Shown: positions 1 through 32,000 of the stretch, in pieces
How positions within the stretch are numbered: the first letter of the stretch is position 1
Layout of the letters: every line of letters starts with the position of its first letter
DNA from: Amoeboradix gromovi X-113
Taxonomy: Eukaryota > Fungi > Sanchytriomycota
Direction of reading: 5' to 3'
Length of the DNA: 32,000 nucleotides
Assembly: GCA_018985225.1 (NCBI GenBank)
Contig: JADGIF010000030.1
Span: 453-32,452, forward strand
Program-made: the position numbers and the translations under genes
Notes under the pieces: model-generated
What the model was told of the DNA's origin: nothing
The model's database searches: none
The model's input: only the letters and a program-made list of their open reading frames with translations

Positions 1-184
1 GCACCTGTTAGTTATTTCTTTAGAATTGATTTACCATTTGGGAAAAGGAAGAATACCTAGTATTTAAGCTATTAGATAAATCTGGAAAAGTCATGAAATT
101 ATACAAAAATGCATACAAATTCGCAATAAATGATTTATTCAAGAAAATAGTCAAGCTGTTTACAGAGTTACTCTCCTCGGTATC

Positions 185-16131: not shown

Positions 16132-16694
16132 TAATATAATAACTTAAACAAGTACTAAAACTGATTGTGCTCAAGTGCGGTGGACTTGGATTCTTTGGCT
16201 GATGATGCATAGTATGTAAAACTAAACCAAGTACTTGCAACTAAAGATATCGCAAGATTAATAACAATAAATTTATTTACAAGTTTGTCAGACAGTTAGG
16301 ATGCTTCTGATGTACATGCTCAGCCTACTTTTTGGAAAAACAATGAAGAAGATTAGTTGTTAATATGGCAAACGATAGCTGTGCGGGACATAAGGAAAGT
16401 TATTCGAAAGCAAAAGTGAGTGATAAAAAATGGCTTATCATGGGAATGCACGTTGTAGACACAGTCACAGAGATCCAAGATTATGCCATTTGGTGCGGTG
16501 ATGTTTCCACAGATGTGAAAGCGTTTATCAACCATCTTCAATTCACTGAATGTCTTCTAACAAATGGTGAAAGACAGAGAAAATGATGGCGTAAATACTT
16601 TGCTCATTCCTTATGTGATGAATTTTGCGGTAACTCTGTAAAATTGGTTGGAGTATTAGTCTCTAAACTGAAAATTTGAGGAGTAAATTTGGAG

Positions 16695-18432: not shown

Positions 18433-18754
18433 TTCTATCTATATCATAAGTTGATTCTAAAACAATATGAGAAAGAAGTTGAATACAATATAGACAGAAG
18501 TTGAATACAAAAGTGTCTACAATTTAAATAAAATCCATATTTTTCAATCGTAAATATTTGAGGTAGATGTAGCAATACACTCTGTTCAATCGCTACAGGA
18601 GAAAAGTCATCTATCAAAATAGGTTCTTCGAGATGAGTTATTTCATTTATAATAAAACCTGTGCTACTATAATCATATTTGTAATAACGTTTTGAAAGTT
18701 CTAATATCAAAGCAGTATGATTTACCTCTGATAATCCAGAGACTACAAACCAGA

Positions 18755-18897
18755 TGGGACATGCTCTGTAAAAACTAGACTAGGGGTAAAAAGTGGGTGA
18801 CGAGATAAAGCCAATTAAAGTTGTTTCTTGACAATACTCTGTAAAAAGTAGACTAGGAGTTGTTTCATTGAATATGCTATGTGAAATATAGTCTAAG
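18755..18897 (+). repeat. Transposon-terminus-like sequence with a subterminal repeat array
   Basis: 30-mer TGGGACATGCTCTGTAAAAACTAGACTAGG (18755-18784), then tandem 39/40-nt units 18819-18857 and 18858-18897 ending in TAGACTAGG and TAGTCTAAG. Same family as 23767-24004. Confidence 0.7.
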
Positions 18898-23698: not shown

Positions 23699-23766
23699 AT
23701 ATTCGTTAGCTATCGTAAATTATACCAGTAATATTTCTGTACAGCCAAAAATAGATTAAATATACA

Positions 23767-24004
23767 TGGGACACGATCTGTGGAAACTAGACTAGGAAAA
23801 AATCACGATTCTCTATAAATTCAATTTTAAACTTTTTATCACTTTTACATTGTGAATACTAGACTAGGATTGTTTGACCTGATTTACAGGGTAAAAGCAA
23901 TAGTTTTTTTAGTTTGAAAGGACTTTCATTAATAATAGTATTTCCTTCTTATGGAGCACCTCCTTTAAAGACGACTTGGTCCAGTTTTTATATTTGGTGT
24001 CCTA
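23767..24004. mobile_element. MITE-like element of about 238 bp with degenerate 30-bp TIRs
   Basis: Left TGGGACACGATCTGTGGAAACTAGACTAGG (23767-23796). The reverse complement of 23975-24004 (TAGGACACCAAATATAAAAACTGGACCAAG) matches it at 20/30 ungapped. Internal TAGACTAGG at 23860-23868. Confidence 0.6.
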
Positions 24005-24011
24005 GTTTATA

Positions 24012-24191
24012 AACTGTCATTTGGAAATACATAGGCACCGTATGGCAGCAAGAACAAATGCTTGAATTATATGCATTCCTGTTATATCCCACGTCAGAAC
24101 AGTGGAAGCGCGGCAACCGCTCTGACTTAGAGGCTGGTATTATTAATCTCACTTTGGAAAATTTCAATTTTCTAGGAAGTTAGGGCTTTTA
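24012..24191 (+). mobile_element. 3' fragment of a TnpB/Fanzor2 element (copy 1)
   Basis: Translates NCHLEIHRHRMAART, a decayed CxxxxDRDxNAARN RuvC-III motif. Collinear with 26897-27074, with the last 37 nt identical at 30 positions. Confidence 0.8.
24088..24191 (+). ncRNA. omegaRNA-like scaffold, copy 1 (more decayed)
   Basis: Hairpins AGTGG-AA-GC[GCG]GC-AA-CCGCT (24101-24121), GAGGCTGGT[ATT]ATTAATCTC (24130-24150) and AATTTT[CTAG]GAAGTT (24166-24181), directly downstream of the TnpB remnant. Confidence 0.6.
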
Positions 24192-24728
24192 TTGGAAGAT
24201 GTGCCACTATACAAAATAAAGGTATGGAATTTGTAGTTAAGCCTAATTTTCTCAATCCCCAGTTCTGGAAATCAAGATCATGTCTTATCTTTCGCAAAAA
24301 GGATGGCTTTTTAACAGCATTCTATCAAAAAATCGTCATTCCATATATGCGCTAACTGAAGTGAGCTTTGAAGATGGGGTTACGGATACTTGTTGATAAA
24401 CTAGCCAAATCATTAACACGATATTATTAACCGGAGAGAAATCCATATTGAACTCTGTTGTAATATAAGTAGATTTATTGAAACGCATACTCATGTTTTC
24501 CAAAGATATCCTTTGGCTGAATTCTGTACAAATCATTTGAGATTATTTCTTGAGCCAAGTTGGTATTAGGAAGCATAGGTCGCTCTAACTTACAATACAT
24601 GTCAAAGTGGTTTGGTATAAGCACACCAGCAGAAACCTGAAGTGGTTTAATCATCTCTACTTCGTGCGGACTGGAATGGTTGTCAAATGGCTTTTTCAAG
24701 GTAGAAGTCATGTTTGAAAAATTCCTTC

Positions 24729-25556: not shown

Positions 25557-26493
25557 ATGGAATTATTATTTGACACCAAGTCTTTTAATTACGATGATCT
25601 TGTTTTAAAAGATGATTTAACAACTGAAAATAGCGTTTGTGCAATTAACTACTCCGAGGACTTTCGACAGCTGCATCTTGCCTGGATCCAGCTCCACGAG
25701 GAAGAAAGCGAACGTGTATTCCATTTATCAACACTCTTAATTCAGCGTAATCCGTCACATTACACTGTGTATATTGATAGAATTAAAATGGTAAAAGTGC
25801 TTAAAAAATCCTTGACAAATGAACTACAATTTATTAACGAAATTATTATGAGCAACCAAAAAAACTATCAGGTTTGGAACTATCGCCAAAGCATTGTGAT
25901 GCTATTGCTGGAAGATTTGGAAGCTGAAGTCGGCAGGAACGCTGTGATTCCTACAGAGCACATCGAATTTCAATCAAAAGCGCAACTTATCGAAAGCGAG
26001 TTGGATTTTGTGCATGACGGACTGGAAATTGAACCCAAGAATTATCATGCATTCACATATCTCTATCACCTTTTGCCTTGGTTCAATGAAAAGATATTGA
26101 GCAATGAATTATTGTTTACGCTAGAACAAATAAACGTTGATGTTTATAACAACTCTATTTGGCATTACAGAATGCAGTTGCTTAAGAAATCAAAAGATTG
26201 GAAAGAGTCAGAAATTGAACTTGTATTGGCGAGTCTAGAGAAGTCAAAGGAAAACGAAAGTGTTTGGGCACATATTGCTGGGTATCAATAACTTACGTAG
26301 AATAGAGGATGCTGTTGGAAACCTTCAAGCTATATACGACTACTGTATCCAGGATAAAAGCCCTTCGATACACTCTTACTGTTATTTAGTTGAACACGGA
26401 TATCCAGTAGAAAAATGTATTGACGAAATGATAAGGATTGACCCAATTAGGCAAGACTTTTGGAGAACTTACTTGCAAGAGTACAATAAATAG
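25557..26493 (+). CDS. RAM2: Protein farnesyltransferase/geranylgeranyltransferase-I alpha subunit (exons 25557-26281 and 26301-26493)
   Basis: PFTA repeats NPSHYTVY, KNYQVWNYR, PKNYHAF, NNSIWHYR and NESVW, plus C-terminal IDPIRQDFW. The 19-nt intron joins the two ORFs. Confidence 0.93.
26282..26300 (+). other. 19-nt spliceosomal intron
   Basis: GTATCAATAACTTACGTAG. Excision gives WAHIAG-IEDAV in frame with the DPIR-containing exon. Confidence 0.9.
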
Positions 26494-26585
26494 TAGTAAG
26501 TCTATTTCTTGTTTTCGTGTGGAGCGAGAGAGATATGCCGCATCAAACACATGCAGCTCGATTGTTTCGCGAATAAATCATTTCA

Positions 26586-27074
26586 AGACTTTTCCAGATT
26601 TATCTAATAGCTTAAATACTAGATATCCTTCCTATTCGCAAATGGTAAATCAATTCTAAAGAAATAACTAAAAGGTACAGCATACATTCATCAACACTCA
26701 GGAATTGGTCGAAAAATGGAACGATTAGATGTCTTTCAATGCCTAGAAAAAGATCAACCATAAATAAACCAATATACCATTTATTTAATAATTCGCGTGT
26801 CTTGCATGTGCAATAACGCGATGTCTTAATACTCATGATGAATGTGCAAGCTGTGGCAATCTAAAGAAAACCAATTTGGAGAGTTGCACTTGTACCAATT
26901 GTCATTTGGAGATATAAAGAGACCATATGCAGCAAGGAATATACATCAAGTATATGCATCCTTATTCAATCCCGCCTCAGGGTAGTGAAAGCGTGAGCAA
27001 TCACTGTAACGGAGATCTAGCATTGCTAGTTTCTCTGTGGAAATTCTCGATTTTCTCGGAAATCAGGTCTTTTA
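26586..27074 (+). mobile_element. Internally deleted IS607-family element: TnpA N-terminus joined to TnpB/Fanzor2 C-terminus (copy 2)
   Basis: 26649-26744 reads INSKEITKRYSIHSSTLRNWSKNGTIRCLSMP (MerR-type HTH of IS607 TnpA). 26791-26828 gives IRVS and, in another frame, Q*RDVL (serine-recombinase YxRVS...QxxDL). 26843-26926 reads CASCGNLKKTNLESCTCTNCHLEI*RDH and 26929-26943 AARNI (TnpB zinc ribbon + RuvC-III). Left boundary uncertain. Confidence 0.85.
26970..27074 (+). ncRNA. omegaRNA-like scaffold, copy 2
   Basis: Three consecutive hairpins: TAGTGA-AA-GC[GTGA]GC-AA-TCACTG (26983-27006, GNRA loop), ACGGAGA-T-CTAGC[ATT]GCTAG-TT-TCTCTGT (27009-27038) and GATTTT[CTCG]GAAATC (27049-27064). Confidence 0.72.
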
Positions 27075-27278
27075 ACGAGGTCATAGAAAATATACTGAGA
27101 AATTTTTATAAAGCTAAATGGCTAAGAAGAGGAAGTGATAACAGATTATGGTTTGAACGCATAAGTGATAGAGAATGGAATTAATATCCGACTATGTCCA
27201 CTTCAAATATTGCTTAAAGAATTTTGTTCTAGTTTTTATATAGCACGCATTATGTGAAATGCTCAATTAAATGATTTA

Positions 27279-27866
27279 TTAGCCCAAAATTAAAATAGGC
27301 TTCAAATAAGATACAAATGCCTCATATTTGGCCTCTTTTAAACCAGGAATATTTTTGATCGTCTGCGAAATAGGTAGCTCATTGTAATATATCAAAATAG
27401 TTGGGATATTCTTAGTTGGATAGTTTGGAATAGCAGTCTTTCCAGGAATAGCACAAAATTTAACATTGCCAAAATCGGCTGCAGCTCGATCCATGAATCT
27501 ACTAAGTACTTGAGATTCTTCAGATCCGTCAAACAATAAAACGACTACAATATCTTTACGACTAGCAACAGTAACGTGTTCTTTATACTCAGTTTGTGAA
27601 ATTTGAAAAACACTACCATACTTGATGTTCTTCATTCTTTCCATGTCTTTCAATCTTTCAAATCGAAGCTTTTGCAAGATTTGCTCTTCCTGGTCCCCAG
27701 ATTCTTCTAGCAACAAATCAATTTCATCTTTGTTTAGTTTATCAAACGGATCTTCGTATACCTCTTCGACTTCTTCAGGCTCTTCCTGTCTTTTTATTAT
27801 TCCATGTTGAACTAAAGCGTCATCCCACTCAGTGGTAACCTTTCCGTAGTTGTTATTTGAAATCAT
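27279..27866 (-). CDS. PLP2: Phosducin-like protein (Plp2/PDCL3 type)
   Basis: TEWDDALVQHGII, acidic stretch, R..RL..M, YGSVFQIS..EY...VT.AS, VKF..I and IPNYP.KNIPTILIY. Confidence 0.9.
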   Translation of the reverse strand: MISNNNYGKVTTEWDDALVQHGIIKRQEEPEEVEEVYEDPFDKLNKDEIDLLLEESGDQEEQILQKLRFERLKDMERMKNIKYGSVFQISQTEYKEHVTVASRKDIVVVLLFDGSEESQVLSRFMDRAAADFGNVKFCAIPGKTAIPNYPTKNIPTILIYYNELPISQTIKNIPGLKEAKYEAFVSYLKPILILG

Positions 27867-28153
27867 CAAGGTGTTTCAATTTCACAAACGAGTTATTGAT
27901 ATTGGCAAAGAACGTGATGTACGTTCCATAAAATACACAAAAAAATTTATTTCTGATTTAACGTCTCTGTTCATAAATTGTGCACGAGAATTAGATTTTA
28001 TGGCAACACCTCAGAACCGGGTTGAATTTTTATTTAAATCTTAGACATGGACAGCTGTTCAGTTTCTCGTGATTTTTAATGCATGTAGCCATAGCTAGCT
28101 AGCGTTTTCGAGTTCTGGAAAGTTGATCAAACTCCTTGCATCAAAAACTAGAA

Positions 28154-31635: not shown

Positions 31636-32000
31636 AATTAGCGAGTACTCATCTGCATTTATAGGAATTCATTCGTGTCATTTTTAATTTGTTATTTATG
31701 AGCTAAATTTCCAGATATTAAACTCCAATCAATTTACTGCTATCGAATAAATTAATTGACAATATTAGGAATCAATACGATAAGCTCGGTTACAAGCATT
31801 TTCAAAAGCTAAAACAATTGGGACAAATTTAAAAACTGGACTTACTTTCTGTAACAACTTGGCACATTATTTCAGCTTTATTAATTATATGGATTCAAGA
31901 GGCGAGTGGACATTCAGCTAGTTGCGGAGTTGACGAGTATAAAAGGAAAATAAATAACTTTTTGTATCGAAATTTCAAAAATAAATATTCTGCACAGCTA

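Follow-up and report, generated by a model that had tools for sequence, protein, structure and literature searches.

An internally deleted, non-autonomous derivative of IS607/Fanzor2 and its family of more than 500 copies in the genome of the sanchytrid fungus Amoeboradix gromovi

The 32,000-nt stretch of Amoeboradix gromovi X-113 DNA analysed here (the window; contig JADGIF010000030.1, positions 453 to 32,452) carries, at positions 26555-27080 of its + strand, an IS607/Fanzor2 element that internal deletion has reduced to a non-autonomous form. This copy encodes neither TnpA nor Fanzor2. The best explanation for it, and one that we regard as very probable, is that it represents the dead, MITE-like remains (a "ghost") of an IS607/Fanzor2 transposon and was mobilised in trans by the TnpA of its parent. 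This is a genuine, new family of unusual abundance within a known class of system, and the window copy itself is a fossil. At the level of DNA sequence, the deletion origin, the dispersal, the end signature and the loss of both enzymes are directly documented. A sequence-only reading of this DNA had already proposed a non-autonomous IS607/Fanzor2 deletion derivative, and this proposal is borne out by hundreds of copies with common ends, by longer copies of the same lineage and by full tnpA-fanzor2 loci in related lineages. The limits given in that reading (26586-27074) fell within the element and are corrected to 26555-27080.

The surroundings of the window copy are gene-dense eukaryotic DNA, and the element lies, as the earlier reading had placed it, between two host genes, in this case between their convergent 3' ends. 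On the left is a protein prenyltransferase alpha subunit gene (25557-26493, + strand, stop codon at 26491-26493), which was searched exon by exon (PF01239, E = 3e-29 for exon 1; second exon assigned by eye). On the right is a convergent phosducin-like gene (27279-27869, - strand; PF02114, E = 1e-7). The prenyltransferase gene appears, by eye, to need a 19-nt GT-AG intron (26282-26300) to keep its frame, and very short introns may be general in A. gromovi. From 5' to 3', the element consists of a left end, a decayed TnpA helix-turn-helix (HTH), a middle of about 55 nt, a Fanzor2 zinc-finger/RuvC-III tail, a putative omegaRNA and a right end, all described here on the + strand.

The left target motif of the window copy is GCAG (26553-26556; RC-AG in the family). 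Based on the left-end logo and the IS607 mechanism (PMC6188088), this is a predicted TAM and its AG (26555-26556) the probable 2-nt crossover core. The left end (26557-26641), delimited by alignments and left-end pattern matches, has lost approximately 32 nt after 26583 relative to the family consensus. It is followed by the decayed head of an IS607 tnpA gene (26642-26786), with an ATG at 26642 and a 29-nt deletion after 26650 that causes a frameshift; independent Logan contigs have loose ends at this same place. The MerR-type winged HTH noticed in the sequence-only reading is indeed present as ITKRYSIHSSTLRNWSKNGTIR in the frame from 26649. A profile built from five TnpAs of the A. gromovi genome scores it at 16.2 bits (best of 500 shuffles: 8.2 bits), and it matches both the IS607 transposase model NF033518 (E = 0.0085) and the TnpA of an intact relative, L166 (E = 5e-7). 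The serine-recombinase RVS motif claimed for the same stretch did not hold up: it is in another frame, scores -2.7 bits and depends on substitutions private to the window copy, and it was rejected as a catalytic motif. The other 15 copies of the same type have TAT where the window copy has CGT. The catalytic domain of the recombinase is itself deleted in the window copy. It also lies about 3 codons past the LYNL equivalent, while intact L166 has approximately 21 residues between LYNL and YxRVS.

This chance RVS falls in a middle segment (26787-26841) that is common to the "type 1" subfamily and has the tnpA/fanzor junction at its 3' end. A deletion junction had been anticipated near 26820-26840; it exists, but at approximately 26836-26842, with Fanzor homology from about 26842. 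When the middle segment was compared with the parents on both strands, as possible inverted or duplicated parent DNA, no score rose above shuffles and two alternative alignments were obtained. Beyond the junction is a Fanzor2 C-terminal remnant (26842-26941) comprising a C4 zinc finger, the RuvC-III RD and AARN; it has one stop and two small deletions, and RuvC-I and RuvC-II are deleted. The CxxC...CxxC, RD and AARN tail had been read correctly: the CxxC motifs are at 26843-26854 and 26891-26902, RD is at 26918-26923 and AARN is at 26930-26941, the last in the next frame, while a stop (26915-26917) occupies the position where the family has Asp. With a profile built from 119 Fanzor/TnpB homologues, the tail with the zinc finger and RD reaches 14.2 bits (best in shuffles: 4.2 bits), and PF07282 matches less decayed copies (E = 1e-19). 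Both halves of the element therefore exceeded shuffled sequence in the type of profile search that had been suggested as a check.

A DNA search of the genome, also suggested with the sequence-only reading, returned 871 candidates. End patterns of 27 and 29 nt matched 523 right ends and 462 left ends, with 0 matches for the reversed controls; more than 500 copies were thus found, and the cognate parent is present in the assembly only as broken copies. At 0.55 kb each, 523 copies amount to an estimated 0.29 Mb at least, or about 2.7% of the genome. The full copies (n = 37) are 449-619 bp in length and have ends identical in kind. They fall into several deletion types, each multi-copy and with the same ends, no two of which are alike in the tnpA/fanzor junction; this pattern of multi-copy types with common ends indicates that internal deletion occurred repeatedly and that its products were then amplified. 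Nearly all sampled full copies retain approximately 240 nt at the right end. Private divergence is about 5% per copy and even along the element, and pairwise identity among sampled copies never exceeds 96%, so that the burst has either ended or become slow. Differences inherited by subfamilies tend to spare the scaffold (10.7% versus 6.0%, Wilcoxon p = 9e-5), the pattern to be expected had multiplication been confined to sources whose right end was intact, and no selection on the scaffold of individual copies was seen in private mutations. The earlier reading inferred an RNA-guided nuclease family that "is or was active" in this genome; past activity is upheld for transposition, and by these sequence measures the activity of the family appears to be past rather than current, with single copies now apparently decaying neutrally.

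Other repeats were observed in the window and elsewhere. The left end and tnpA head of another family copy run off the window at positions 1-157 (- strand), with an ACAG junction 27 nt ahead of the ATG at 185. An older, orphan right half (24010-24195, + strand; zinc-finger tail and scaffold, approximately 70% identical) abuts a different repeat. At L014:1270-2010 (G000:C726), a mini-element has inserted into an older member of its own family, within the zinc-finger remnant. A further repeat family, also abundant, ends with GGGACA and AAAACTAGAC words and occurs at window positions 18744-18868, 23760-24005 and 31806-32000 and at L034:744-1140; in L034 it contains a frame of 90 aa that matches the TnpB zinc finger weakly (E = 0.002) and has a Fanzor1-like look. 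Window positions 16224-16310 show a 73% match to the joined flanks of a mini-element on C459 and are part of another dispersed repeat.

The conserved family sequence has sharp limits, with RC-AG marking the left one and TTTTAACGAG(G/T)AG the right one (right-end logo, n = 52). In the left-end logo (n = 45), R is found in 41/45 copies, C in 37/45, A in 38/45 and G in 37/45, and positions further out are random. Most copies have AG at both junctions. The window copy lacks the terminal AG: the core is expected at 27081-27082, where this copy has TC, and the host DNA beyond (right junction and flank, 27081-27100) would be the guide position by analogy with known systems (PMC10711439). Among the 37 full copies, target duplications measure 0 nt in 33 and 1 nt in 4, and no terminal inverted repeats were found in the element. 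IS607 transposition proceeds by crossover over 2 bp of identity and leaves no duplication (PMC6188088). Precise ends, AG at both junctions and the lack of target duplication are, as far as sequence can tell, the signature of an IS607 serine recombinase, and the RCAG of the left flank predicts a TAM of (R)CAG. No exact empty site was found; three diverged nested or paralogous sites served as proxies and differ by 3 nt in the right cut, which suggests that either of two right-end AGs may be used. Neither an empty allele, nor a circle junction, nor an end-to-end joint was present among the joints listed from one DNA run. Joined flanks gave no restored reading frames of the kind expected for intron-like behaviour, and flanks at the guide position matched the searched DNA only by chance or in other repeats. 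As a test for an IStron, Rfam detected no group I intron core, and the left end is an AT-rich stretch of approximately 85-120 nt.

The putative omegaRNA scaffold and right end of the window copy (26939-27080, with a provisional 5' limit) are supported by folding and by right-end matches. The last 140 nt fold into three stem-loops (fold z about -2), and an Rfam search of the element gave no match. A short hairpin (26971-26982) presents the loop CCTC (26975-26978), which is complementary to the terminal GAGG (27077-27080). The equivalent loop/terminal tetramer pairs are CCTC/GAGG in the window family, CCTA/TAGG in L166, CTTA/TAAG in C542 and CTAC/GTAG in a third lineage. The pairing hairpin follows the RD codons and the tetramer precedes the core; in L166 the tetramer is also followed by AG. 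Compensatory changes across the four lineages lead us to predict that the hairpin loop and terminal tetramer form a pseudoknot, a prediction for which part of the support is post hoc, as the right ends of the single-copy lineages were picked by complementarity. The right end of the third lineage was fixed independently by six copies, and covariation for the pseudoknot within the family is weak. A pseudoknot to the terminal bases is required by ISXfa1 and present in ApmFz2 (PMC10711439, PMC11832414). More tentatively, the retained 3' 140-240 nt may be an omegaRNA scaffold.

There are 12 resolvase matches in the genome, and 9 loci exceed the cut-off of NF033518. One Fanzor of this assembly is identical to protein P004065 of A. 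gromovi in EukProt (EP00835). In the cognate lineage, the RuvC-I region is retained in only three copies (C385, C565 and C977), all with stops or frameshifts, and no intact cognate TnpA or Fanzor was found in the assembly. The 3' parts of the cognate long copies share 88-89% DNA identity with window positions 26842-27080, and C385 and C565 have the DPG RuvC-I and a glutamate six residues before CxxC (E-x6-CxxC), both Fanzor fingerprints (PMC10711439). A relic at G000:C818:6645-6845 matches positions 2-70 of the IS607 TnpA profile as well as the window HTH, and is probably the longest piece of the cognate tnpA. The sister lineage, C542, has an uninterrupted 671-aa Fanzor2 frame (NF040570, 117 bits; D471, E605, D637) that overlaps a TnpA (156 bits) whose HTH contains a single stop. 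The best PDB match of the C542 model is the mimivirus Fanzor2 9B0L (E = 3e-20), and it has an N-terminal extension like that of ApmFz2. C542 was considered and rejected as the direct parent, as it has no DNA similarity to the family and a different right end; its ends differ from those of the family and no mini-copies of it were found. The closest outside relative is L166:33-1900 (SRR22455128), which has an intact IS607 tnpA and a 612-aa Fanzor2, is 31% GC and ends in TAGGAG. The third lineage (C459 and others) is distant and has a conserved GC at its end. In C542, C459, C46 and L166, tnpA lies upstream of, overlaps and is on the same strand as fanzor, and this order is kept in the mini-element.

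A quick tree places the cognate lineage with that of C542 (SH-aLRT 99), together with L166, and puts the third lineage on a long branch among viral sequences. This suggests, short of proof, at least two acquisitions. An IS607 TnpA lies on the same strand beside 59 of 79 viral relatives, and identity to database relatives is only 30-40%. Two further loci were observed. At L075:1490-2450 (G000:C385), relics from two different Fanzor2 lineages are fused, back to back and in opposite strand orientation. At L067:563-1123 (G000:C1028), a DUF5764 gene (E = 2e-10) adjoins a full-length third-lineage element; DUF5764 is a family known from giant viruses, and this neighbour hints at virus-borne entry.

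In the mechanism that we favour, the TnpA serine recombinase of the parent would act in trans, binding the retained ends and excising and integrating the copies. Crossover would occur at the AG dinucleotide, with a preference for RCAG sites, and leave no target duplication. We infer with high confidence that TnpA mobilised the copies in trans at AG cores. In a further step, transcription of the scaffold into the flank would yield a guide that directs Fanzor2, supplied in trans, to the empty site (TAM RCAG, then right flank), sparing the filled site (GGAG before the flank); repair of the vacated site from a filled copy would then raise copy number. An empty site and a filled junction are told apart by the C at -3, and the TAMs of Fanzor2 have a length of about 3 nt (PMC11832414). 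The odds that RNAs from ghosts led a Fanzor2 acting in trans to vacated sites with the TAM (R)CAG are, in our judgement, about even. The full two-part system, in which TnpA moved the ghosts and a few Fanzor2 proteins with hundreds of ghost guides cut vacated sites and fixed the copies, in the largest IS607 expansion in a eukaryotic nucleus and with a competent Fanzor2 still left (in the sister lineage or an unassembled cognate copy), is speculative and on the whole unlikely.

The 3' region may instead have been kept only as a TnpA-binding right end, the ghosts giving no guides and Fanzor playing no part in their spread, a reading to which we give slightly less than an even chance. It is consistent with a private mutation rate that is equal in scaffold and coding remnant, with contigs showing copies in which the hairpin region is deleted and with the dispensability of TnpB for IS607 transposition (PMC6188088, PMC3627910). 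However, the 240 nt or so kept at the right end is far above the 20-80 nt needed by TnpA in bacteria, the target C at -3 separates empty from filled sites in a TAM-like manner, and RNAs from Fanzor1 ghosts do function (PMC10432273). Selection on the scaffold of the window copy, as an active guide RNA or one of use to the host, would account for a scaffold approximately 1% off the consensus compared with 12% in the zinc-finger remnant; this contrast was noticed post hoc and largely reflects subfamily columns, and several other copies are equally clean. A domesticated or live element is improbable. Capture of a Fanzor remnant by a eukaryotic cut-and-paste or rolling-circle transposon (the Fanzor2* case) is known in molluscs and Chloropicon (PMC10711439), and other repeat families in this genome adjoin some copies. 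This reading is largely refuted by the absence of target duplications and terminal inverted repeats, the tnpA head inside the element and the same dinucleotide at both ends, and we consider it very improbable. Contamination (bacterial, algal host or virus) or an assembly artefact might be suspected in a single-cell assembly with heavy decontamination (PMC8371127), in which the contig of the intact Fanzor has low k-mer coverage in its name, a caveat that still applies to the single C542 locus. For the family, however, it is hardly credible: copies are spread over hundreds of contigs, with eukaryotic genes on either side, independent Logan contigs run from both flanks into the element at flank depth, and the right-end pattern had 0 matches in viral contigs and one in metagenomes, a chance match inside a prophage gene.

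IS607-type Fanzor2 elements, Fanzor2 in fungi and ghost loci have been published (PMC3627910, PMC10530073, PMC10432273), and surveys have reported up to 122 Fanzor copies (PMC10530073) and 134 Fanzor1 ghosts (PMC10432273). Eukaryotic IS607-like sequences were found at 1-22 per genome with no evidence of transposition (PMC3673617), and transposons are not mentioned in the description of the reduced, 10.5-Mb A. gromovi genome (PMC8371127). In the literature searched, the coverage of which is incomplete, no paper linked Fanzor to Amoeboradix, Rozella or the sanchytrids, and there was no report of a sanchytrid host group, of the scale of more than 500 copies or of clear traces left by IS607 transposition in a nucleus. 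The dispersal of more than 500 copies, with junctions of the recombinase type, provides strong genomic evidence of IS607 transposition in a eukaryotic genome, and it indicates that transposons with RNA-guided nucleases once spread massively inside a eukaryotic nucleus. The copies also give a statistical read-out of the target motif, with a testable TAM and scaffold, and the analysis points to two natural intact Fanzor2 frames, those of C542 and L166.

Like the IS607-type Fanzor2 elements of mimivirus (ApmFz2/ISvMimi), Acanthamoeba and Naegleria (PMC3627910, PMC10711439, PMC11832414), the sanchytrid elements have tnpA (HTH, then serine recombinase) and fanzor in frames that overlap, DPG, the shifted glutamate, an N-terminal extension, no target duplication, a probable dinucleotide core, a predicted terminal pseudoknot and a predicted short TAM. 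They differ in the probable core (AG rather than GG), the predicted TAM ((R)CAG), the sanchytrid fungal host and the form of the family, which consists mainly of hundreds of 450-620 bp deletion derivatives. The 134 ghost Spu-1 copies of Spizellomyces punctatus (PMC10432273) are similarly approximately 550 nt in length, keep both ends and the omegaRNA region (putative in the sanchytrid family), have lost the nuclease frame and outnumber full copies; however, Spu-1 is a Fanzor1 with 30-nt inverted repeats and a TA duplication, while the sanchytrid family is IS607-type, lacks inverted repeats, retains coding scraps and has about four times as many copies in a genome under half the size. The sequences of Gilbert and Cordaux 2013 (PMC3673617) are likewise IS607 fragments, from fungal, oomycete and amoebal genomes, in which the zinc ribbon is most often kept; many arose by segmental duplication and their number per genome is low, in contrast to the unrelated flanks, precise ends and high copy number seen here. 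With bacterial IS607, IS1535 and ISXfa1 (PMC6188088, PMC10711439), the family shares a probable 2-bp crossover core, the lack of target duplication, unlike ends and a predicted pseudoknot beside the predicted guide, in a host that is eukaryotic and by a mechanism that is here inferred.
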